Assembly: GCA_020184695.1 (NCBI GenBank)
Contig: JAANOX010000227.1
Span: 62,001 to 126,000 of the forward strand
DNA: 64,000 nt
Origin: Histomonas meleagridis 2922-C6/04-290x
Taxonomy: Eukaryota > Protista > Parabasalia
Reading direction: 5' to 3'
The position numbers were made by a program, and so were the translations under genes. Every line of letters begins with the position of its first letter. Position 1 is the stretch's first letter. Below, piece after piece: positions 31,883-56,751 of the stretch. Under the pieces are notes generated by a model. It had not been told where the DNA came from, did not search any database, and saw only the letters and a list, made by a program, of their open reading frames with translations.

Positions 31883-34800
31883 TCACTCAAACGGTACCAT
31901 AATTTCGCACAAACCGGAGCCTGCATTCACCACATTACCCACTGACAAACACGCGGAAGGTGACTTCATATTGTCCTTACTTCCATGTAACGATGCGTAA
32001 GATAAGAATTGCGTTGTTGTTTTCGAAAGACATTTGTTGGAAAGGCGAAGGGCAGCACTTCATTGAGTGTCTGCTCATTCCCAACCATTCACCAGTGTTT
32101 GTTACGTAATCAGCGATTAATTGCAAATGTCTTTTATCGATTGATATCGAATAAGCATTAAATACATTTTGTACTTCTTTAATTATTGCATTTCTTGCAG
32201 CTTCTATACCGAAATGTTCCAATATACCATAGATATGATTTGTATAGAAGTGATTTATATCGACTAAATCATTTTCGATAATTTCATCGAAGTTATAACC
32301 TTCTGTGTTTATTACAACTTGACCATTCTTATTGAAAGTATAATTAGCTTTAGTTACGCCTTTAATTTCTTGGATTTTAATTTCATTTAATACATTTTCG
32401 ATGATTGAATCCAATAATATTTTAATGTTTACATTTGAGATATTAAATCGTACAAACATTGATAGTTCTTCTAAATTAATATCTAATTCCATTTTGTCTT
32501 CATCATTTTTAGGTTCTTCTTCATCATTATCATTTGACTTTTTCTTTTTATTATTTTTACTTTTATTTGTTTCACCAATTTCATCGTCATCTGCTTCATA
32601 TGAATTTTGTTCATTTTTACGTGTGTTCTTTTTACTTAAATCGGCACCCATTTCTTCATAACGTTGATTAGAATTCGCATTTAATGTTAAGTCGTCATTA
32701 TTCACTTCATTAATTTTAATTCCTGTCGACTTAAGTATTGAATTAATTTTCTTTTTAAGTAATGATGAGAATTTACGTTTTAATGTTAATAACTTTTCAT
32801 CTTCATATAAATTCCATTTATTAAATTGTTCTTCATTAAATTTTAATATGATTGTAATGATTCGATTCCGTTTAACTTCATTTTTAACATTAAAGTCTTC
32901 AATGATTTTATATGACTTAATAATTTCTTTCAGTGAAACTCGTTTGAATTTAGAAACAAATTTTTCTGCTTCTTCTTTATCATTTTGAATCTTTAATGGT
33001 ATAGACATTGTCGGTGTAATTGGTGAATGTGTAGCAACAACTAAAATTTCACGTAAACGTGGAATACCTAATGTAACATTAGCGCCACCATAACCGGCTA
33101 AGTGAAAAGTATTTAATGTCATTTGTGTAGCTGGTTCACCTATAGCTTGTGCAGCTATAATTCCTACAATTTCACCTGGTTGAATTTGTGACTTAAAATA
33201 ATTAAATAATGCTATAGCTTTAAGTTTTTCGGGATCAATTTTATGTTCTATATTTTCATTTTCACAATATGAATTTAATGATTTCTCAAATGATTCACTA
33301 ATAGAACCGACATGAATATGTGGTGGATATATTGATTGGATTGGATTAGTACGTTCTTCTTTTCGAATCAAGTAAATTCATCGCTTCTTCACATTCTGCT
33401 TTTTCCATTAATTCACTAATATTTAATTTGCTTAAATATGCATTATAATTATCTTCCATGAACTCAAATTTTTCGATATATTTGTTATTCATTGGATCAA
33501 TTCCATCTTCGCCATATAAGAATTGGATAATATTATCATCACTATTACGGACTGTACCATCATATGCTACACGAATTCCTTCCATATGTTTAATGATACA
33601 TCGTTGTAAATATCCAGTGTTAGCTGTCTTAACTGCAGTATCTGTAAGTCCTTCACGTCCTGCCATACAATGGAAGTAATATTCTTGTGGCTTTAAACCT
33701 GTTAAGAATCGACTACTAATAAACCCACCTGCTATAGGCGCTAATTTCATTGGTTTAAATGATGGTAATGATTTACCTGATGACATAAATGGTACACGTT
33801 TACCTTCAAGTTCTTGTTGTCCTAATAAACATGCCATTTGTGATAAGTTAACGACTGATCCTTTAGCTCCGGATTGTGTCATTGTAATTAAACAATTCTT
33901 TGGAAATCTTTTCGATAATTGTAATGGAAAGATGGCGGAAATAATCTCTGTGGCTATTGGATTAATTGCATTCTTCATATGATTATCAAAACGTTCCTTT
34001 AAGTCCGGCTTCATAACTAATTCAAGAAGTTGTTGCTTAAATGGTAAATGTGATTTTGCTGGTGATCCATATTCTTTAACAAAGCTTTGACCTGCTTCTT
34101 TTGCTGCTTCTTTCATTTTTTGATTCATTTCATTACGAATATGTTCAGCTCTATGTGTAATTACCATATCATCTATACCACATGTAAATCCATGTGTTTG
34201 TAAATAATATGTAAATAAACATGATAACATTGTAAGAAATCGACCAGCTAATTGACTTCCATAAAGCTCAAAAAGACTATGAACTAAACCATATGTAGAT
34301 GCACCATATTGTGCTTTATCCATGATACCATACATTAATTCAGAATCAAAGAAACAAACATTACATTCTTCTGGATCACTACGTAAAAGTTGATTAGTGA
34401 ACTTGCTTTTTGATGTGAGCATTAACGGTTCCTTGTCTTTTGTAAGGTTTATCAAAATTGTCGATATAACTTGTTTACCTGTCCAAAGTTGTTTTGGATA
34501 AATAATTGCTGGTTGAAGTAATATTAAACGACAATTAGGTTCATTACCAAAGGCAGAAAATACAAGTTGTGAATATTGGGAATATGTAAAGAACTTATCT
34601 TTCATTGTAAGTAAAGCACCTGAATCTACATGATCTTGAATTAAACCTCGAATTGGATTTCCTGCTGTAGGTGTTACATAATGAATTGATGATAATGATA
34701 AATGCTTTGCTTCAGATCTTCCTAATTCATTTTGTAAAAGATGTAAATTGATTTCATCACCATCAAAATCTGCATTAAATGAGGCACAATTACTATAATG

Positions 34801-36267
34801 CATACGTAATGTTTTTTGATTTGGTAAAACACGTGCTTTCATACCTAAAATTGAAACACGATGAAGAGTTGGTTGACGATTAATTAAAACAAAATCACCA
34901 TCTTGAACATGTCGACCAACAATAATTGGCATAGAACCATCATTAGAATAAATCATCTTTGCAAATTTATTTCTTTCTTGATCGGTCATGTTTGCTAACC
35001 TATAAGTACGTCCTTCACCATTTGTTATAAAGTTTGCTCCAGGATAAACATCGGGACCGTTTAAAATCAGTTTTGACAGTTTATCTTTGTTGAATTCTGT
35101 GACTTTTTCTGGGTACGATAGAGTTTTGGCAAAAATTTCGGGTACCCCAATTTCATCTGTTGAAATATATGGATCTGGTGTAATAACTGAACGTGCAGAA
35201 AAGTTTACACGTTTACCCATAAGATTTTTACGAAAGAGTCCTTCTTTCTTTTCAAGAATTTGACGAATACCATGTGGAAGTTTCTTATTACTTTTAACAA
35301 GAGTATTATCAAAAAATGCATTAACGCTTGATTGAAGACGAGAATGGTTATTATTAATTCCATCTTTGTCATCGTCAGCTATAGATTTTGCAAGTGATAT
35401 TTCAGATTTAACAATATCTGCTAACGCAGATGATGATGGATGAGCATTGATTTTATCTCCTAAAACACTTGCTGGACGGAACTTTGAAGGTGTGACACAT
35501 ACTGTTTCAATGAAAAATTGACTTGGGCCAATATCAGAAAAGAATTCATTGTAGAAAGATTGATTTTTTTCATAAAATTTGTAAAGTAATTCTTTGATGT
35601 TTTCGATTGGAACAAAAGATGCATCGTTATTATTAACAAATTGAAAATGAAATGAATCGAATTTGAGTTCAGAACAACCACTTTGGCAATTTGAACATAT
35701 TTTCTTATACGTTGCAATCTTAGAAAGAAAAGTTTTGATGACCGTTGAACGCATTGAAGATGTATAAGAGTTTGGTGGAATAACTGGAGTAGAATGAATT
35801 ACTTCTTCCATAACTCTTATCTTTTCTTTAAGCTGTTGTTCACCATCATCAACAAAATTCATAAAATCATGTTCGATAACAAAACCACGAGCAACAAGTT
35901 TAAGAGCCATTTCAACTTGGATTACAATTTGTTCTGGAATTCTTAGCATGTTGCAATGTGGACACATGCCACAAATTAATTGCCTCAAATTTTTTATATA
36001 AAAAGGATGATAAACTGGTCTTGATAAATGAATATGACCAAAGTGGCCATTACAATTCCAAGCATTTTGACCACATATTTCACATTTTTGACTATTTTCT
36101 GTGGCACCTAAACGAGGATCATAAACACCTTCTTTAATTGGATTTCCAGAATGATCAAAAATACCACTTCCAGTAATTGGGAGTACACTAAAAGATTCTA
36201 TATCTTCTTTTGTGTAAGAGGTGAATTTAACTGAAGAAATGGGAGAACGAACTTCTTGGAACTCCAT
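31883..36267 (-). CDS. RPA1: RNA polymerase I largest subunit; two apparent +1 frameshifts (about 33360 and about 32022)
   Basis: CxxC/GHFGHI zinc site, GKRVNFSARSVI, RQPTLH, NADFDGD, and Pol I-type TLNTFHLAG.GGANVTLGIPRLREI. Removing one A at each A4 run joins the two ORFs and restores the C-terminus ETTTQFLSYASLHG..SPSACL..G.....GSG, ending at TGA 31883-31885. Confidence 0.93.
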
Positions 36268-37015: not shown

Positions 37016-37088
37016 GTACCACTGGCCCAATGGATAAGGCGTGTGCCTACGGAGCATGAGATTCCAGGTTCGAGTCCTGGGTGGTACA
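37016..37088 (+). tRNA. tRNA-Arg(ACG), copy 1
   Basis: Acceptor GTACCAC/GTGGTAC, anticodon loop CT-ACG-GA, T arm CCAGG-TTCGAGT-CCTGG, T7 terminator. Confidence 0.97.
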
Positions 37089-37129
37089 TTTTTTTGATTT
37101 TTTAGATGCAAGTATTTTTAAGTCGAGAA
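37073..37129 (+). repeat. Left copy of the 57-bp target-site duplication (tRNA 3' 16 nt + terminator + flank)
   Basis: Identical to 54949-55005. Confidence 0.93.
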
Positions 37130-37181
37130 AATGATACTACCGGAATCAGCACCCCTGATAACCTTATTAAGATTTCTTTTT

Positions 37182-37375
37182 GGTACTCTCCAAGCAAAAG
37201 GGAAAATTTGAATACCTTCCTCTCAAAAAGTGGAAATGCCTTTCAATTATGCGTGATTTTTTGAATAGCATTGAAAAATTTTCATTCAAAATATTTTTGT
37301 GAGAAAATATTCCTTCTCAAATTCGATTTCTATGTTCTACATTTTTTGACATAAAAATTTCTGAAAATTTATAAA
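37182..37375 (+). repeat. Left terminal inverted repeat of the 11-kb element
   Basis: Reverse complement of 47996-48189 at 185/194. Confidence 0.95.
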
Positions 37376-38822
37376 TTGCCATTGTATTTTTTAAATAATT
37401 TTAAATTATTCGATATTTTCAATTTTAATATGACAAATATGCACTGACACGCAACATTCTCAGATATAATATATTTATCGAACTCAATATTTATAATGAT
37501 AATATATATTAAATTCGTTTCCGAAATTCGGTCATAGGTATACTGGGAAGATATAAGAACTAGCCATTAAAAATACATAATATATGCACATAATTGAGGA
37601 TATTAATTAATATAAATATGAAATAATATTCATGATAAGTCAAGATAAATTTTTTTTCATTTTTAAAAGTGACAAATATCACTTTTGTATGGTTTATTTT
37701 CGTCGGTGCGCCGATGGTAAACGATATGACCAATAGATGCAAGATAAATGAGCAATAAATAAACATATTTCTTGATCAATTCATTGCAAATAAAGAAAAA
37801 AATACCAAAAAATATCATTAATCATTATTTGAAATAAAAATATATGAGGAGGGGGGTGGGGGTAAAAAAAGAACGACCCTTTTATCTCGACTTCTATTCA
37901 ATAAAAATTATTTTTAAATTATATCATATTTAAATATTCATTATTAAATCTAAATATGTGAGCATTATGTTCATCATGTCCAAATGCAATTGTTTTCAAT
38001 CATTAAATTTTTCTTTATAGACATTTAGAAATATTGCCAAATTGCATAATTATTGGTAGAGGAATGACATTAAATTCGATGAAGAAGTTATGTTTATATT
38101 AGATATATTAAATATACTATTAGTTAAAAAACCAATTTGTTACACTATCTATTGCATAATTCGAAGAATTGAGAATTTTCACCTTATTTAGAATATTTAT
38201 GTTCATTTGATTAATATTTGAAACTAATAATTTATCGTATTTCATAAAGAATATTGAAATATTATCAAGTTTTTTAAGCACAAAATATAATATCTTATAT
38301 ACTCAGTACCAAACAAATAAAGATCATGAAACTGGATTCTGCAATATATTTATTAATATATTACCACATATAAGTAAAAAAATGCAAACGAATTAGATAA
38401 ATCGAGAATAATAATAAGAGTAATTAAAGATTACATTAATATTTTATTTATTTTTTTAATATCATAATTTAAATTCCATTGAAAACAAAAAATCGGAAGA
38501 TATAATCAAGAATAAAAAAAATGTATATAAATATCTACAACAAAGAACAAATATAAAATATTATATAACGAGTTAAATATTACTAAAATACATCAGATAA
38601 TGAGATAACTCATTATTATAATAATTAATACAATGAACAACACATGTGTTGATAATTTAATTTATTATTGTTGATGATGCGAAATCATTTATTGTAAGTC
38701 ATAATAAATCAAAAAGATACAACAATTTTTATGCAACAAATTATTATCAAAAACCAATTTATCACTGAAATGATTCATTAATAAATTATGATTCATTATT
38801 GCATTAATGGAATAATCTTCTA

Positions 38823-40494
38823 TTATAATAATTCCAAGAACAGTGAAACTATGGCAATAACAATTCCTGTAATTGCACTTGGATGAAGCTTTGTACCATT
38901 ACTATGGCTCAATGGGCATACATCGCTTATTTTGTTACCCTTGGTAACATTGATCTCTGCAAAAGTGCTTTTAGAATATTCATTTGTTACATAAATAGTT
39001 GGACTATCAAATGTTGTATTATAACACGATGGTTCATTCTTACCATAGAAGCAAACAATTTCAAGACTCATGCATGAACTAAAAGCATAGTTATCTATCA
39101 CATTAATGTTCTCTGGAATGATAACTTTCTTAATGCTATTGCAATTGATAAATGCGCCTAATCCAATCGTTCTTACTGAGCTGGGAATATCAATACTAGA
39201 AATCAAAGAACAACCTTCAAATGCATATTCTTGGATTGCTAATATGGTTTTTTTGGAATTACAACATCACCTGATTTTTCCAGAAGGGCAAAAATATTAA
39301 TTTAGTAATATTTTTTTGTTATATACAATTCCGTCATTGTTATAATTGGAGTAATATACATTATTTAGTGAGATGGTTACAGATACTAAATTTGGACAAT
39401 TTTGAAATGCAAATAGACCAATTGAAACCACTGAGTCTGGAATATTGACATTGTGGAACAAACATCCATAAAACTGGAAGTCTTGTAATACTGTGATTGA
39501 ATTGGGAATACTTAAATTTGTCAACAAAGAACAATTAATGAACGAAAAAAGACACCAATTGATTTTTACAGAATTGGGGATATTTATATTTGTAATAAGA
39601 AAACAATCCTCAAATGCATAATCTTCAATTAATTGAACAGAACTAGGAATATTAACAATACCTTCTACTGCTGGTGGACATAATATTACTTTTTGATATG
39701 TTTTTTTATCATAAACAATTCCATCATTATTATAATTCGAATAGATTTCATTATTTTTCAGAGATTTTAATTGCCTTTAATTTTGTGCATGCATCAAATG
39801 CAGATTCATTAATTAGGGAAACTGAAGAAGAAATTTCAATTTGCTCTAAATTTAAACACCTATAAAACGCAAATTCTTGAATTTTTTCAACAGAATCTGG
39901 AATTATAACATTTGTTATCTGCCTGCAATCAGAAAAAAAGAGGAATATCCTATTGATTTTACAGAATTGGGGATATTTATATTTGTAATAAGAAAACAAT
40001 CCTCAAATGCATAATCTTCAATTAATTGAACAGAACTAGGAATATTGACAATACCTTCTACTGCTGATGGACATAATATTACTTTTGATATGTTTTTTTA
40101 TCATAAACAATTCCATCATTATTATAATTCGAATAGATTTCATTATTTTTCAGAGATTTTTAATTGCCTTTAATTTTGTGCATGCATCAAATGCAGATTC
40201 ATTAATTAAGGAAATTGATATAGGAATAATAAGCTGGTCCATAGAACAACCATAAAATGCATAATCTTTAATCGTTGTAACAGATTCACCGATTACTACA
40301 TTTGTTAATTTGCTCTGATTATAAAAAAAGCATGGCTATCAATCACAAATACATTGCTCCCAATTTGCAGTTTTGAAAAATGACCAATGGTTTCAATATC
40401 ATCTCGTGTAATAGTTGAAACATTAAAGACTTTAAGAGTATCATTTTCGAGAATAAAGTTACAGCATGTGAAAATAGGAAGAAGGTAAAAACAT
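38823..40494 (-). pseudogene. BspA-like LRR surface protein gene, frameshifted in this assembly, inside the 11-kb element
   Basis: Signal-like start at 40494; LRR_5 fragments (VIIPDSVEKIQEFAFYRC, IPSSVRTIGLGAFINC); TM-like C-terminus SAITGIVIAIVSLF; about 260-bp internal direct repeat with 394-bp offset (from 39558 and 39952). Confidence 0.8.
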
Positions 40495-40546
40495 GTATAA
40501 AAAAATAAATGCCATCTTTGGCAAATTTAAAAATTCAATTGTTCAA

Positions 40547-40942
40547 ATGTTTTTCTTGATCCCTATTATCATTGTTGCCAGACAATCAACAGAAAATAAT
40601 GAGGAAAACAGTGCTAAGCCAGGACTTTTAGTTAATGTTAAAGGAGATCTTGATTTCAACGAATTAATAGATCAAATCAGCAAAATAGTAGGTTTCTTGC
40701 TAACAGCAAAAAATGAAATTCCAACAAATGGAGGTGGTAGATTTATTACAGGTGTTGATTCCGGTAATGTTTATGCATTTTATTACCATCCGTCAAAGAG
40801 ACACAGAGTTTCATGTAGACCAGGACATGGCCAAAGAATTCAACCAAAAGATCCAGTATGGTTTGAGGCAAATGAATGGGCCTATGTTATTCTTAAATCA
40901 GCCTGGTATGGAGGTAATCGATGCTGGTATGATGATGAATAA
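40547..40942 (+). CDS. Secreted lactococcin-972-like bacteriocin-family protein
   Basis: Hydrophobic N-terminus MFFLIPIIIVA; C-terminal GGGRFITGV...VYAFYYHPSKRHRVS...ANEWAYV...GGNRCWY resembles the Lactococcin_972 family pattern, recognised by eye. The ORF track extends upstream to 40493. Confidence 0.62.
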   Translation: MFFLIPIIIVARQSTENNEENSAKPGLLVNVKGDLDFNELIDQISKIVGFLLTAKNEIPTNGGGRFITGVDSGNVYAFYYHPSKRHRVSCRPGHGQRIQPKDPVWFEANEWAYVILKSAWYGGNRCWYDDE

Positions 40943-43561
40943 ATCTAGATTAAGTGTAAGAACTTCAATCGATTTATTTAATTTTTAATAATTAAATAAT
41001 TTTTTAAATATATTTTAAAAAAATTTTTAATATTATTTTTATATTATTTAATGTTTTTTTATAATGTTTTTATGTTATTACCATATAATAATTTAGCTAT
41101 TTAAAAATATATTATTCGATTTTTTGATAAAAAAATGCCATTTTTTTGCTAAAAATGCCATTATAATCCAAAATTTCATCAAAATATTTGCATGTAGGAA
41201 TACAACAGATTATTTTTAAAATGTATATTGTTGATTGAAAACATGTGTTTTGATCAGAATTATTCTAATATTGAATAAAAAATATTATTTTTTTTTTTTT
41301 TTTTATGGAATTGTATGAGAAAATAATATAATGATAGCCTAACATAAATTTATGTTATGTACATGCATACAGCTTCATCAAATTTGTGTATTTTCACTTG
41401 TTTATTCATGCTTTTTTTTATTATCAAATGTTTTATCATGTTCATTCATGTTGTTCTATCTTATCTTGTGCTTATTCATGTTTTTTCTCATTATAAAACT
41501 TTTTTTCATATTATCTCATTTTGTATTAATAATTTTTTATGTTTGTTCACATAATTTCATATTTATTCGTGTTATATAATGTTTATAAATTAATTTTTGA
41601 ATGTTATCTCATGATTTTTCTATGTTATCTCATGTTATATCATATTTATTAATGTTTTTTTCATATTATCTCATGATTTAATATGTTGATTCATGTTTAT
41701 TCATGTTTTTCATTTTATCTGATATTTATTTATGATTTTTTTATGTTATCTCATGTTTATTCATTTATATTCTTTTTTTTTCTTGTCATAAAATGTTTAT
41801 TTATTAATTTTAATATTATCTCATGTTTGATTTGTTGTTCATTGTTTATTTTCAATGTATTATCTCCATGTTATTCATAATACATGTCATAATAACATAT
41901 AGTGAAATTTTTTATATTTTTCTATGAATTGTGTGACATTTTACACTTAATAATTCCATGAAAATCCATTTTGTTTATCAATATCAATAGATTTCAAGTT
42001 ATAACATTCGTCAAATGAAGTTCCATCAATGAAAATTACAGAATTAGATACTTATACTGTTGTTAATGCACTTTGTTCATTAAAAGAAAGTTCTTCTATT
42101 TCTTAAACAGTATCCCCTATAATTACTTATGTAAAATAATGATTAATAAATAGCAATTAATATATATAATAATTTATCATTTTTATGTTTCATTATGTTG
42201 TCTTCATTTGATTTTTGGTTTATTATATATTGTATATAATAGAAAAAGCAAATGAACAGGAAAAACTATATATATTTCATAAGAATATCAAATAACATAT
42301 GAAAAACACATTTGAACACCATAAATAACATAAGAATATGAATATTTACATTCGTAAACATATTGACTATGTAATTTACAATATATTATGAGGCTTGTTT
42401 TTATTGTAAGCTTTGCCGAATAATAACCCAATTTTTTGGGCAAGAAAAATAAATTATATATAAATAAAACTATAATATGCTGATGCATTAAATGTCAATA
42501 TACATATTCTACATAATAAGATAATATTTTAAAACTTTTTTCTTACTAACCAGAAATTAGGGTATTTAGATCAATTTATATTTACCCCCTATTCATATAT
42601 CAATAATATATATTTCGATTTTATGAATATATAAATATCTTATTTTTATCATAATATAATTGAATTTATATAAAACACCTTAAAGTTAATGTATCGATTT
42701 TTTTGTATAAGAAATTCTCTTAAATGATTATATTTTTTTAGATAATTTATGACTATTTACTCAAACAAGTGAAATAACTGCAGTTATAATGTGAAATAAA
42801 AAGGGTATTTTTCATCAAGTAGAGTTGCAAACATAAATTGTTATATAAAAATTAACATTGAGTTACGGATGAGAACCTTATTAGCTGACAACATAATTTA
42901 ATAACTTTCATACTTTAAATATAACATTAGACTTTCATTTGTTATAATATAAATAAAAAACTTCTTTCTAACTTTCATCAATATTTCTCAAAAATTCATT
43001 TGAATGTTGTACCATTTCATTTCTTCTAACAACAGTTAATTTATATGGGATCAGCTTTCGAACATATTCCATATAGTACAAAGCATACTTGAAAACTTTT
43101 AAATATATTTTATGTATTGCCTAATATTTAAATAATATGTTTTTTGTACTTGCATATGAATATTTTGGAAGGATCTATGTAAATGACTCAATTAAGTTAC
43201 TGTCGTCCATTTCATTAGTATATCGGAATAAGTATGATAAATTCACTTTTTTTGCATTTTTTACAAATCATTTTTACTAGATATCAATGATCATAATTTA
43301 TTCGATTACAAATATATTTAAACAAATTATTTTTTTATAAAAATTTAATTGGATTTAAATGATATATATAATCTTTAATTTAATGAGCTATTTATGAAAT
43401 ATTATATGAATTAATTGATTTTGCTGATTATAATATTTGATTAATATCGAATTAAACTAATAAATTAAATTTCTTTTTTTATGTATACGCTTTTATTTAT
43501 TATTCATATTAATAATAATTCAATATTGTATGCATTATGCGTTTAATATTTATTTGTTATT

Positions 43562-44521
43562 ATGAATTACAATCAGCCTCAACAATTATCTTTCCCGTTT
43601 ATCGATAATACTCTCTCTTATTTTTTTTTTTTTTTTAATGAAGACGCAGCTATTCAATTCGCATTACAGAATGGAGTTATTTATAATCAAATGATGTGTG
43701 AAGAATGTAATTTCTATATGCAGATCTACAGGGATTCTTCAAAAAGGATTTGGATACAAATGGATATGCACAAGATGCCACAAATCAAAAAGTATTTTAT
43801 ATGGAAGTATTTTTTACTCAGCAAAAATATCACTTTCTAAGATTTTTTATTTATTATATTGTTGGGTATATAAATATTCATGTAAAGATACTGCGAGAGA
43901 AGTAGGAGTGAGCAGAAACACAGTAACTTATTATTTTACTTTATTTAGAAATGCATGTGATGCATATGTTTTATCTTTAGAAGGTCTTGTTGTTGGCGGT
44001 CCTGATAAAACTGTTCAAATAGATGAAACTTTAATGTGTCGAAGAAAATATAATGTTGGACGATGTTTAAATCAAGTGTGGATCTTTGGGGGAATTTGTG
44101 TGGAAGATAGACAATTCTTTTGTCTTGTTGTACCTGATCGAACAAGAGAAACATTAGAAGAAGAGATTCGTAATCATATATTACCTGAAACAAAAATAAT
44201 TTCTGATTGCTGGAAAGCGTATGACTTTCTTGATGATGACAATGATTACGAGCATGAAACTGTTAATCATTCATGTAATTTTGTTGATCCTGAAACTAAA
44301 GCGCACACTCAAATGATAGAAAGACTTTGGAGGGAACTATTAATAAAAGATATGAAGGAATCCCAGAAAATAAAGTCAATGAACATATATCAGAGTTCAT
44401 GTGGAGATGGAATGTTATTCACAATAAGGATCAAATGTTTAGGGCCGCCGTTCAATTAATTGCAGACACAAAGTTTACAAAAGTAATTGATTGCGATGAA
44501 GAAGAAGAAAAGTTGGAATAA
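43562..44521 (+). pseudogene. Merlin/IS1595(ISXO2)-type DDE transposase with two frameshifts
   Basis: Zinc ribbon CEEC...WICTRC, VQIDET, WIFGG, ISDCWKAY, HETVNHS, HTQMIERLW and EFMWR; frameshifts near 43745 and 44340. Confidence 0.9.
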
Positions 44522-44589
44522 GTAAAAAAATCATATCTTCGATTGTTATGATCATTTTTATTTCTAGAAAATTGAGGATAGAAATATAA

Positions 44590-45140
44590 ATGATATTTTA
44601 TTATGTTATTTAAATATCGATTTGTGAAGATTTATGTTACAAATTTCGAAATTTCGAAAATTTAATTTTTTAAAAAAATATGTATATATTATCTTTATTT
44701 GATGACATATTTTATTATATTATTTAAATATTGATTTGTTTTAAATTTTTTTGTTACAAATTTTCGAAATTTTGAAAAATTTAATTTTTTTAAAAAAATC
44801 TGTATATATTATCTTTATTTGATAACATATCTTGTTATATTGTTTAGATTTTGTTTTTGTTTAAATTTTTTTGTTACAAATTTTCGAAAATTTTTGAAAA
44901 ATTTAATTTTTTTAAAAAAATCTGTATATATTATCTTTATTTGATAACATATCTTTTTATATTGTTTAGATTTTGTTTTGTTTAAATTTTTTGTTACAAA
45001 TTTCGAAATTTTGAAAATTTAATTTTTTAAAAATCTGTATATATTATCTTTATTTGATAACATATCTTGTTATATTGTTTAGATTTTTTTTTGTTTAAAT
45101 ATTTTGTTACAAATTTAGAAATTTTGAAAATTTAATTTTC
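44590..45140. repeat. About 113-120-bp tandem repeat, about 5 copies, just downstream of the transposase
   Basis: GTTACAAA anchor recurs at about 44636, 44753, 44873, 44993 and 45106. Confidence 0.9.
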
Positions 45141-47995
45141 GAAAAAGATCGTCATTAATAAATCCTATATCGTGGTAAACATTAATGTATTATATACACT
45201 TTAGTCCTATTAATTGTTTACATTAATTTCATATGTAAAAAATCTTCTCAATTTTTAAAAAAATCAAATAAATTCATTAATATAGCTCATTAATAAACTT
45301 GACATATGTTAAAAAAACTTCGATAAAATCTTATTCTATACATAAAAAATCGGCTTTTTCAGGAATAATTAAATTTATAAATTTTTTTCTGATTTCAGAT
45401 TTCAATCACATTTCTCATGTTTAGTAATGTATACATATTTAATCCCTCGAATTTTGTCCAACCAAACATATTGCAATCTTGAAAAATATAATAATTTTCG
45501 GTAAAATGATGTTCATTCAATTATTGAATGATAATTCAATATTTATACAGAAAATTCTGCGTAAAAAGCAGTTAATTCCAAACATTTATTCAAAAAGTGA
45601 ACATTTTTTTTGAAGAATTAATTATTACACACATTCATTTATGAGCGATAATATTATTTTATCTGGTAAATTTTTCATTTTTGTATGAAAAAAATAGTGA
45701 AATAATCTATTCTATTTTTAAAAAATGTTAGAATATTTTTTGAAATATAAATCTAATGAAATATATAATTTTTAATGACAAAAATTGATATAATTTTAAT
45801 TTGATAATAATCTTTTTTAAAATCTTACCAAAAACACACGGGGATTCAACTTATTTAAAGTCTTATATGTACATGACTGTATATCTTATAATTTTTTCTT
45901 AGTTAGCGAGAAAATAAGTGTATAAAGTTATTGTCATGATGCTAATTGATTTTTATGGCAAATATGAATTTATCGATCATTTGTTGATATGATTAAAATT
46001 AGTTCATTTTTTAATCATATTTATAATTAATAATCATTAATAAACAGTATATTAATCTTGAAATAGTTCAACATGAAAACATTTTTATTTTAGATCTTAA
46101 AAGTCTTCTTTGTAATTATAAATCACTTATATATATATATCCATTGAAATTTAACATTATTAAAGATTTTTATAGGTGATTTCACGAACCTTGATCCAGA
46201 AAATAATTGTAATTTACAATTTTCATAATTGTAGCATAAATATAATTTTCCGAAAAAATCATTTCTAAATATTTTATAGTTTCCCCTCTATAATAATGAA
46301 TGAAATCTACGCTCTCTTATATATTTTATTTCAAATTCATTAAGTACAATTACTTTTTATTACATTTCGAGTTACTACTATTTCTTATGCATAATATAAA
46401 GAATAAGTTAGGTATCATAATAATTCATATAATTATATTAAATTTATACATTTTGTTCATTGATAGATCAAGATAACTTAGAATATTTGAAAAAATTTCA
46501 TTATTTAAATCATAAGAGAGAGACTAAATTAAGGTAGAGAAGTCATAATTTATTATAATAAACAAATTAATATAATATTCATATTTAAAAAAAACATATA
46601 TACTCATTTTTATTAATTTAATTCATGCTTTGTTATATTTTTTAATTGACATGTATATTAAGTGTTTTTTTCAATGTTTTCCTATGTTTTTTTTTTTTTC
46701 CCCCCCCCCCCCCCAGTTCTTTATGTTATCTCAACTTTATTCATTTTTATTCTATATTTGATGATGCTATTTCATGCTTATCAAAAAATTAATATATTCC
46801 ATTCTTTTTTTATCTTGTTAAATTAAGCTTATTTATGCTTATTCATTTTAATTATGTGTTTTTCTCCTTGCATGTGGTATGAGTGTTATATGTGTTTATG
46901 TGCCGGATGATATATATTAAAGAAAATAGCTAGGAGATTTGCATAATACTTATTATATGATATTTATATTTAAATAATCTTGGAATAATATATTATTTCT
47001 CAAGGAAAATTTTAGTATTACCAAAATTGTTTGTAAAAACTAGTCTTTTACGATTATGGAATCGTAAATGGAGCTTTATAGATATTCATTAACATGTTAA
47101 TATTATTATAAATGATTAAAGGAATAAAAAAAAGCTAATAAAATTATAATTTTATATACAAATGTCATTAATAAATCTTGTTTTTTTATGAACACAGCCA
47201 AATAAGAAATGTTGAAATACCTAATTCTCTTTATTACAATAGAATAACTTATTTTATAGAATATTATTACATGAAATTATAATACCAAAATCAGCGATGT
47301 CAATTTCTCCAAAATATTTTTATCTCATATTGTATTATGTTCATATATGTTAAAACCATGCGATTTTTTTCGTGTTGTATTTCATTCGAATAATAGTAAG
47401 GAGGGATTTTTAATTATTCTATTTATTCACAATAAAGTAAGGACACTTAGTTTGAATAAACTTTATACAGTATTGAATCGAAAATTACTTTAAATGAATT
47501 CAAATAATATTGTTATTTCATTTGATCTATTATATCTTGTAGCTTATTCACTCATGATTCTTCATGTTTACTTATGTTAATTCAAATTCATTTGTGTTTG
47601 TATATATACCTACTCATGTTCATTAATGAATGCTATAGTTAATTCATGTTTATTTATTATTCTTTATGTTGTTTTTTTAATAAAAATCTTGACAATTGTT
47701 TTTAAAATGAAAAAATCTCAATATTAACTGAATATAAAGAAAAATTAATGAAACTTTTAATATATCATATAATTTTAATAAATGTGATAAAGATATTTTT
47801 CAACTATTTAATTTTAAGTGAAAATGATTATCTATAATAAAAAAAATTCGAATATTTTAATATTTAACAAAAAGCATTAATTATTATATATGTTTTTTGG
47901 TTTACAGATCAAAATTATGAATGTGTACTGATTTATCAACAAAGCAATATTTTTTTGGTGGCGACCGTTCAAAGTAAAAATCTATTTGGTGACAT

Positions 47996-48189
47996 TTTAT
48001 AAATTTTCAGAAATTTTTATGTCAAAAAATGTAGAACATAGAAATCAAATTTGAGAAGGAATATTTTCTCACAAAAATATTATGAATGGGAATTTTTCAA
48101 TGCTATTCAAAAAATCACGCATAATTGAAAGGCATTTCCACTTTTTGAAAGGAAGGTATTCAAATTCTCCCATTAGGTTGGAGAGTACC
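47996..48189 (-). repeat. Right terminal inverted repeat of the 11-kb element
   Basis: Reverse complement of 37182-37375 at 185/194. Confidence 0.95.
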
Positions 48190-48325
48190 TTCTTTTTGGA
48201 CGGAAAAAATTTTTTCGGAGATAAATAATTTCGAGATAATTTCTCCAGAAATCATCGATAGTCTATACAGAACACAGCAGGAACACCTCCAGAACGACCA
48301 CAACACATCTAGAGGTATCATTAGT

Positions 48326-54948: not shown

Positions 54949-55005
54949 AGTCCTGGGTGGTACATTTTTTTGATTTTTTAGATGCAAGTATTTTTAAGTC
55001 GAGAA
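54949..55005 (+). repeat. Right copy of the 57-bp target-site duplication (begins with the 3' 16 nt of tRNA-Arg)
   Basis: AGTCCTGGGTGGTACATTTTTTTGATTTTTTAGATGCAAGTATTTTTAAGTCGAGAA, identical to 37073-37129. Confidence 0.93.
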
Positions 55006-55252: not shown

Positions 55253-55325
55253 GTACCACTGGCCCAATGGATAAGGCGTGTGCCTACGGAGCATGAGATT
55301 CCAGGTTCGAGTCCTGGGTGGTACA
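55253..55325 (+). tRNA. tRNA-Arg(ACG), copy 2
   Basis: Identical to 37016-37088; oligo-T terminator follows. Confidence 0.97.
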
Positions 55326-55371
55326 ATTTTTTTCATTTTTTGATGCGAAGTGTTTAATATCTTAAAATTTT

Positions 55372-56751
55372 GTACCACTGGAATCAACATCCCTGATAAC
55401 CTTATTAAGATTTCTTTTTGGTCGGAAAATTTTTTTTTCGGAGATAAATAATTTCGAGATAATTTCTCCTTGAATCATCGATACTCTATACAGAACACAA
55501 CAGGAACACCTCCAGAACGACCACAACACATCTAGATACCTCTAGAGGTATCATTAATTTTAACGGAGAATTTTTGAAAAATGTGATAAATTCACCCATC
55601 ACAGAATTACTTCAATTTAGCACCTACAACCTTATTCCACCACAAAACACATTCCCATGTTTGTTTTATCCACTTTGTCAACGAATTTTTTATACATTTT
55701 CAGAATGCATCAAACATGCATATATGGAAGAAGAGCATGAACCACAAGAAATCAACCAACTAAAACGTTTCTTACCTCACGAACTCACATTATACGCTTG
55801 TTTATATGAAAGATTCAAATTCCAAGTCCCAAATATTATCAACAATTTAATATCATTTTCGTTTCATTAAGAAACATCGATTTTGATTTTAACAACTTGC
55901 CACCTTGGTTAGGGCTAATTAATAAAAACATGGGTTTAGCAGTTCCAGTTCTACCAATTCAATTTATAAATGGTGACCTGATCAAAAATAATATTGACTT
56001 AAACAATATAAGTAATATTCCCCAAATCGATCTGAACAATGACCCTACAGTCAAGGAAATTACAAATAATGGGGAACTAATCAATTGTGAAATATGTGAT
56101 ACGATTCCAATTATTGAAGAAGTAAGTGATGAATTAATGACTAGAAATGATAAAATAAATGAGTTAAGAAATAGATTATTATCTTTTATTCTACACATAT
56201 TAGAGAATAACTTTAGAAACAATTCTGGAAACTATAATCAAGTTCATACAAATGAAGAAGAAGTTAAAATCAAAATACCAGAAGTTTCTATTGAGCGTGA
56301 AATAATTCCTATTAAAATCCCGGAAACTAAAATTACATTATTTAATCAAGAAATTAATATTCCTGCCTATTCTATGGCACAAGTGCCAGTTAATATAGAA
56401 ATCCCTAATTATCAATTAATTCAACGTGACATAGAATATCCCATAGATATACCGAATTATGTTAGAAATCCAACTACATTCGAAATAGGTATTCCAGACT
56501 ATCATAAATATCAAGTACCGATTGAAAAACCAAATTATCAATTAGTAGAGAGTAAAATCGATGTTCCAGTTGATACACCTAATTTCATATATAAACCAAA
56601 AGACATCCTAATACCTATTGAAAAACCAGAATATCAATTAGTGGAAAGTAAAATTGATGTCCCAGTTGAAACATCTAATTTTATATATGAATCGGAAGAC
56701 ATTTTAGTACCTATTGAAAGGCCAAACTATCACCTATTAGAGAGGAAATAA
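55372..56751 (+). mobile_element. 5' part of a second copy of the RLE retrotransposon (internal deletion of about 310 bp relative to copy 1)
   Basis: High similarity to 37135-37181 plus 48198-49740; ORFs 55574-55870 and 55897-56751 are near copies of the copy-1 ORFs. Confidence 0.92.

Follow-up and report, generated by a model that had tools for sequence, protein, structure and literature searches.

The window analysed here is a stretch of 64,000 nucleotides from JAANOX contig 227, which belongs to one of two published Histomonas meleagridis genomes (WSYJ00000000 and JAANOX000000000; Palmieri et al. 2021, PMC8529796). Locus L002 of that contig (JAANOX010000227.1, assembly GCA_020184695.1) and the window agree at 100% over 16.4 kb. 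On its forward strand, at 40547–40942 with the stop codon included, we found a gene encoding a lactococcin-972-like protein of 131 aa (P0001), recognised from the open reading frame (ORF) list, the sequence and a PF09683 match of 22.9 bits. The frame ending at 40942 has two possible starts in the window copy, 40493 (149 aa) and 40547 (131 aa). Only this copy has the ATG at 40493, which originated by a 3-bp insertion and four substitutions at 40490–40500, and the start in the other copies is the codon matching 40547. Since the upstream ATG is missing from those copies, it was dismissed and 40547–40942 was taken as the right coding sequence; the intact frame reported in the initial annotation is thus present, with its start confirmed. 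A run of 131–149 open codons greatly exceeds what chance would give at about 24% GC. An overlapping 91-aa ORF (40713–40988) and a 41-aa antisense ORF were regarded as by-products of the real frame.

The same protein, letter for letter, was called on four contigs. The contigs that carry the gene are 139 kb to 3 Mb long, and its neighbours there include Rpb1 and a TCP1 chaperonin gene; in the DNA runs of both samples, 0.92–1.00 of the words sampled from its coding sequence were present. Its GC3 was 0.22, against 0.11–0.27 in the large host ORFs of the window, indicating host-like codon use. It is a genuine nuclear gene of Histomonas meleagridis. The neighbouring gene for the largest subunit of RNA polymerase II (31977–36267, minus strand) comprised two ORFs in the window; one assembly annotates it as a single gene and the other as two, as would be expected from indel errors in the assemblies.

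The gene lies within an element of 11,008 bp (37182–48189) bounded by an inverted repeat of 200 nt that is 95% complementary. The left terminal inverted repeat (TIR, 37182–37381) starts with GGTACTCTCC and was defined by inverted repeat I1 and by the same end in three further copies (L001, L003 and L009, below); the right TIR covers 47990–48189. Directly outside the TIRs, an 8-bp direct repeat, TTCTTTTT, forms the left (37174–37181) and right (48190–48197) copies of a target-site duplication (TSD). Through joining the flanks with one TSD copy removed, we found that they match the sequence from 55378 onward at 41 of the first 45 bases, and that the same 8-bp target stands there uninterrupted (55412–55419) in a neighbouring paralogous repeat, which acts as an empty site. 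The element therefore interrupts one copy of a local repeat whose uninterrupted target copy lies 18 kb downstream, and a TSD together with an uninterrupted paralogous target is the classical signature of insertion. Two tRNA-Arg(ACG) genes followed by repeats were also observed (37016–37129, 54949–55005 and 55253–55366), and the 57 nt at 37073–37129 are exactly repeated at 54949–55005.

Two further genes were found within the element. A Merlin/IS1595-type DDE transposase gene occupies 43562–44521 on the forward strand in three frames, and was assigned through PF12762, NF033547, its relatives and frame maps. Its pieces matched PF12762 at 4.6e-11 (43.4 bits against 27) and NF033547 at 77.3 bits (cut-off 75). 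An intact transposase in relatives has about 320 aa. Sixty-six relatives were found; those of 300–320 aa are up to 85% identical, and the nearest named ones are animal ISXO2-like proteins, which we take to form the Merlin superfamily. TIRs and a TSD of 8–9 bp are hallmarks of Merlin/IS1595 elements. The other gene, on the minus strand at 38823–40470, encodes a BspA-type leucine-rich-repeat surface protein with a C-terminal membrane anchor (PF13306 LRR_5, 1e-11 to 1e-15; frame maps). It is divergent from the lactococcin-972 (Lcn972) gene, with the two starts about 75 bp apart, and in the window copy its coding sequence is scattered over several frames and lacks a start codon. The remainder of the element is AT-rich satellite. 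Inside the element, the regions 41400–41860 and 44590–45200 contained T-rich repeats spaced at about 10 or 40 nt, and also a tandem array of five units of about 115–120 nt. A literature search found no paper on this Histomonas element, and metagenome scans with P0001 and with the TIR end gave no match.

Copies that share the ends and the internal order of the element, 96–98% identical and in unrelated flanks, were present on WSYJ contigs 180 (L001) and 60 (L003); neither showed a clear target duplication. A further copy on WSYJ contig 147 (L009) is orthologous to the window locus. The element is thus present at no fewer than three loci per genome. Immediately 5′ of the transposase gene, both L001 and L003 have some 400 bp that are missing from the window copy (window 43182–43681). 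Together with the TIRs, the TSD, the unoccupied target copy and the Merlin/IS1595 transposase, these loci bear out the earlier statement that the gene sits on a mobile element. The accompanying idea that the transposon spread the gene is upheld as far as spread within the genome.

The transposase and BspA-like genes were broken at different places in each copy, as shown by frame maps of the window, L001 and L003, and no assembled copy contained an intact transposase such as an autonomous element would have. The two assemblies differed by 21,822 raw indels, and only 2 of these were true (PMC8529796), so many of these breaks may be nanopore homopolymer indel errors, especially in multi-copy DNA.

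Peptides of the lactococcin 972 family are secreted bacteriocins of Gram-positive bacteria; Lcn972 binds lipid II and blocks septum formation. The initial annotation had assigned the Histomonas protein to this family by eye. Taken alone, the single-sequence Pfam score of P0001 was marginal: PF09683 matched aa 62–122 with 22.9–23.3 bits (E 1.3e-4) against a gathering cut-off of 22, which is the weakest Pfam match of the family, and TIGR01653 gave 14.2, below its cut-off of 32.1. Single-sequence phmmer of P0001 against the PDB returned no match, and a word-indexed protein search returned only P0001 itself. When 1.84 billion representatives were searched exhaustively with phmmer, 28 proteins reached E ≤1e-3, and eleven of these reached E ≤1e-10. 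From these homologues we built alignment A1, composed of 29 domain units, and PF09683 matched every one of the 29, at best with 1e-15. The A1 family profile matched lactococcin 972 (2LGN) at 2.5e-7 and Formosin D (9HKJ) at 3.4e-5, and the Y-x-H-x4-H and W-A motifs aligned between the profile and the solved structures.

The structural comparison agreed with the profile. AlphaFold2 with A1 gave a mean pLDDT of 80.5, rising to 93–97 over residues 61–131, which were modelled as a six-stranded sandwich. The top two Foldseek matches in the PDB were 9HKJ (E 1.8e-3, TM by target 0.62) and then 2LGN (TM by target 0.79, rmsd 2.4 Å over 68 columns), both with a probability of 1.0. A feature search of the ESM Atlas (score 0.90) retrieved bacterial Lactococcin_972 clusters, the Atlas structure match was a Lactococcin 972 cluster (TM 0.54/0.64), and the nearest Atlas clusters were all bacterial. 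Judged by profile and predicted structure, P0001 is a member of the lactococcin-972 family, and the by-eye call was correct.

That the match arose by chance, or that the assembly contains bacterial contamination, could be suspected from a Pfam score only 0.9 bits over the cut-off, the TIGR01653 score below its threshold and the empty phmmer search of the PDB. However, both the profile built from the family and the structure bear out the family call, and the gene sits on large eukaryotic contigs of two independent assemblies, in a eukaryotic transposon and with host codon use. We consider such an artefact refuted by the family profile, the structure match and the contig context, and leave it practically no probability.

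No immunity or ABC-transporter ORF of the kind found in bacterial Lcn972 operons was detected within 37182–48189. This is expected in a eukaryote, because eukaryotes have no lipid II, and that gene context is a trait of the bacterial loci and not of the protein family.

Three parts can be distinguished in P0001. The first, aa 1–12 (40547–40582, plus strand), is a hydrophobic N-terminus and a probable signal peptide, judged by Kyte–Doolittle values and by likeness to relatives. It reads MFFLIPIIIVA, with a Kyte–Doolittle value of 3.1 over residues 1–9; the hydrophobic stretch is 11 aa long, without a charged n-region, and the N-termini of P0007, P0008 and P0004 resemble it. For two Trichomonas relatives of 136–137 aa, signal peptides were predicted (PMC12612818). 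The signal-like N-terminus described earlier is therefore real as a hydrophobic segment, and its signal function is putative.

The second part, aa 25–61 (40619–40729, plus strand), is a module of about 37 aa with the motif D.N.L.DQI, conserved among the eukaryotic relatives in A1 and modelled with a strand (27–29) and a helix (37–48) at pLDDT 70–83. Relatives with several domains have it ahead of each one (five units in P0002, two in P0005), and charge counts across the family revealed no consistent acidic charge. What had been called a pro-like segment is thus a conserved module, and the acidic-propeptide reading was dropped: a module repeated with every domain and lacking consistent acidic charge looks, from the family alignment, like an integral part of the folded unit, not a cleaved propeptide.

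The third part, aa 62–131 (40730–40939, plus strand), is the Lactococcin_972 domain, a predicted beta-sandwich supported by Pfam (aa 62–122), the family profile, the model and Foldseek. The C-terminal motif quoted earlier is present: three glycines, YYHPSKRH, EWAY and a final GN..WY. All 29 aligned sequences have H81 and H86, which aligned to the histidine motif of 2LGN; A112 of the W-A motif is kept, and N109 stands where more than 90% of members have glycine. The domain is mildly cationic (net +2, pI 8.7).

Named relatives were TRFO_19861 of T. foetus (P0011) and TVAG_097990 of T. vaginalis (P0019), the latter labelled 'bacteriocin (lactococcin 972) family' by one source. Most of the others came from metagenomes or sequencing runs, and only P0025 was clearly bacterial. 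In a tree inferred from the 29 units by maximum likelihood, with sparse bacterial sampling, P0001 and P0003 were sisters (support 95/91) within the clade holding the T. foetus and T. vaginalis proteins. P0001 was the most divergent member, with a branch length of 1.35 against 0.20 for P0003, and its weak single-sequence Pfam score is due to this long branch. Another protein of the Lcn972 type, P0021, was found in the MMETSP transcriptome of the foraminiferan Ammonia sp. and paired (support 100/99) with P0017, a metagenome protein of 190 aa with a cysteine-rich N-terminus; P0021 either shows that the family is present in a further eukaryotic lineage or is a contaminant.

A recent study (PMC12612818; Mol Biol Evol 2025, msaf276) described 'AMP-Lcn972' genes in T. 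vaginalis, T. gallinae and T. tenax as the first bacterial antimicrobial-peptide gene acquired laterally and conserved in Trichomonas and other Metamonada. Its authors noted the two invariant histidines and overlaid AlphaFold models on 2LGN; one T. gallinae gene was induced by co-culture with E. coli, and recombinant Trichomonas domains impaired E. coli growth. Table S2 of that paper lists two H. meleagridis homologues, KAH0788655.1 and XP_067770210.1. The only H. meleagridis sequence that our exhaustive phmmer search retrieved from the 1.84 billion representatives was P0001, so both accessions are very probably P0001. The Histomonas gene as such was therefore already known (PMC12612818), and neither 'transpos' nor 'mobile' occurs in that paper.

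The lateral bacterial acquisition proposed in the initial annotation agrees with these data. A bacterial origin fits the distribution of the family, the nearest Atlas clusters being bacterial, and PMC12612818 reached the same conclusion; the direction of transfer rests on that paper and on the family distribution. The T. foetus gene and the relatives from metagenomic protists sit among ordinary eukaryotic genes, so the transposon association of the Lcn972 gene looks, on these genomic neighbourhoods, specific to the Histomonas lineage.

Considering the architectures of the relatives, the Lcn972 fold might have been repurposed in metamonads, for example for another ligand or as a structural or adhesive module, and might not kill bacteria through lipid II. 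In eukaryotes the conserved module of some 37 aa makes the unit longer than its bacterial counterpart, and as many as five such units can stand in tandem. In P0002, P0005, P0011 and P0013, one to five Lcn972 units follow a common, uncharacterised N-terminal domain of about 100–150 aa, which has the motif SLFL.Y/CCFI and then a conserved C..F and gave no Pfam match. Several relatives have no signal peptide, as also in Table 1 of PMC12612818, and some of the domains are not cationic. On the other side, the histidine pair and the motif around it do not vary between Lactococcus and Histomonas, and Trichomonas members have been reported to be induced by and toxic to E. coli (PMC12612818). Such a change of function seems improbable to us. 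Lipid II binding, to our knowledge, is known only for Lcn972 itself, and a literature search found no paper on the mode of action of Formosin D.

We next consider how the gene has been kept. Four copies of the coding sequence (window, L001, L003 and L004, the last a contig from a further sequencing run) showed no difference over 396 nt, and the 450 bp directly downstream had 16 substitutions and 11 gap columns. No run of identity among the three aligned element copies was longer than the 452 bp at 40530–40981, within which the coding sequence lies. Windows of 396 bp free of any difference numbered 57 of 10,612 in the element (0.5%), and 13% were free of substitutions; elsewhere the copies differ by 0.9–1.7% in substitutions and by many indels. 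The Lcn972 coding sequence is thus the best-preserved stretch, which is suggestive of selection but is not proof. The identity spans synonymous sites, and it could have arisen without selection, through recent copying, through gene conversion or because homopolymer errors are fewer in coding DNA.

These observations bear on whether the gene is an inert passenger, captured by the transposon, no longer used by the parasite and intact since its copies are young. We regard this as rather unlikely, although several observations are in line with it. The RNA evidence that the initial annotation had suggested as a check came out negative: the four RNA runs on record for this species contained none (0.00) of the sampled coding-sequence words, which is weak negative evidence because the runs are small and kept as contigs. 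P0001 is set apart by its long branch and scores weakly against the profile, neither the BspA-like nor the transposase gene is intact in any assembled copy, and there are zero synonymous differences from which purifying selection could be shown. In the orthologous copy of the other strain (L009; WSYJ01000147.1, 543–887), an 85-bp gap at about window 40473–40557 removes the start codon and the hydrophobic N-terminus, and with one extra A besides, a 114-aa product was called; the gap may be an assembly artefact. Against disuse stand the position of the coding sequence as the longest identical stretch of an otherwise diverged element, and the retention of every family-defining residue save one glycine. 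Since the exhaustive search found no paralogue beyond the element copies, the element may be the only source of this protein in the species, and the breaks in the neighbouring genes may often be the nanopore indel errors mentioned above.

We prefer the reading of a gene in use. An ancestor of the parabasalids would have taken the Lcn972 gene from Gram-positive bacteria, and in the Histomonas lineage a Merlin element would then have captured it together with the neighbouring BspA-like gene. The short hydrophobic N-terminus may route the protein to the secretory or endolysosomal pathway, and its targets would be caecal bacteria outside the cell or bacteria ingested as food. An antibacterial function of the Histomonas protein is suggested by analogy with Trichomonas (PMC12612818). 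Taken as a whole, this account of a Merlin-borne Lcn972 gene of the metamonad branch, Gram-positive in origin, with a secreted product directed at bacteria, is probable in our estimation, with considerable room for doubt. For the family and fold, the eukaryotic host context, the location in an 11-kb Merlin-type element with copies at no fewer than three loci and the standing of the coding sequence as the best-preserved stretch, our confidence is very high. We might further speculate that the 11-kb element is a cargo-carrying Merlin whose bacterial-derived antibacterial gene and BspA-type gene have their copy number set by it, and which possibly moves between gut protists; this is an unlikely extension. 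If true, such an element would parallel, in a eukaryote, the bacterial transposons that carry bacteriocin genes, and it could be the first Merlin with cargo to be described.

Histomonas meleagridis is a gut parasite of poultry that depends on caecal bacteria, and we know of no licensed treatment against it; proteins with which it handles bacteria are therefore of practical interest. The Lcn972-type genes of metamonads are a recently published case of a eukaryote borrowing a bacterial weapon. New here is that, in one lineage, the borrowed gene is the cargo of a transposon and has been multiplied by it, which links lateral gene transfer, gene capture by transposons and change of copy number. The window adds a defined cargo-bearing Merlin element, its copy number, the preservation of its cargo and the middle segment of the protein as an integral module.

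Compared with lactococcin 972 of Lactococcus lactis (2LGN), the Histomonas protein shares the predicted beta-sandwich, the Y-x-H-x(4)-H motif and the W-A motif. The bacterial protein is exported via an N-terminal signal, to which the hydrophobic N-terminus of P0001 is a putative counterpart. The two are only about 19% identical, and the Histomonas protein adds the strand–helix module of about 37 aa; the mature lactococcin 972 is a bacterial peptide of 66 aa, whereas the Histomonas gene resides in a eukaryotic nucleus. Formosin D (9HKJ) was the best Foldseek match and was matched by the family profile as well, but it is bacterial and only 14% identical.

With the AMP-Lcn972 proteins of Trichomonas and other metamonads, P0001 shares the C-terminal Lcn972 domain and the two invariant histidines. 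Some of those proteins have a short signal peptide, and a bacterial lateral origin and a microbiota target have been proposed for them. The difference lies in the setting, since every Histomonas copy found is inside the 11-kb Merlin-type element. That element resembles Merlin/IS1595 (IS1016) elements in its DDE transposase (PF12762, NF033547), its 8-bp TSD and its TIRs starting with GG. It departs from them in its length of 11 kb, its 200-nt TIRs, its two host-type genes and its satellite arrays, whereas the close metagenomic relatives of its transposase were found on contigs of 1.3–2.5 kb.
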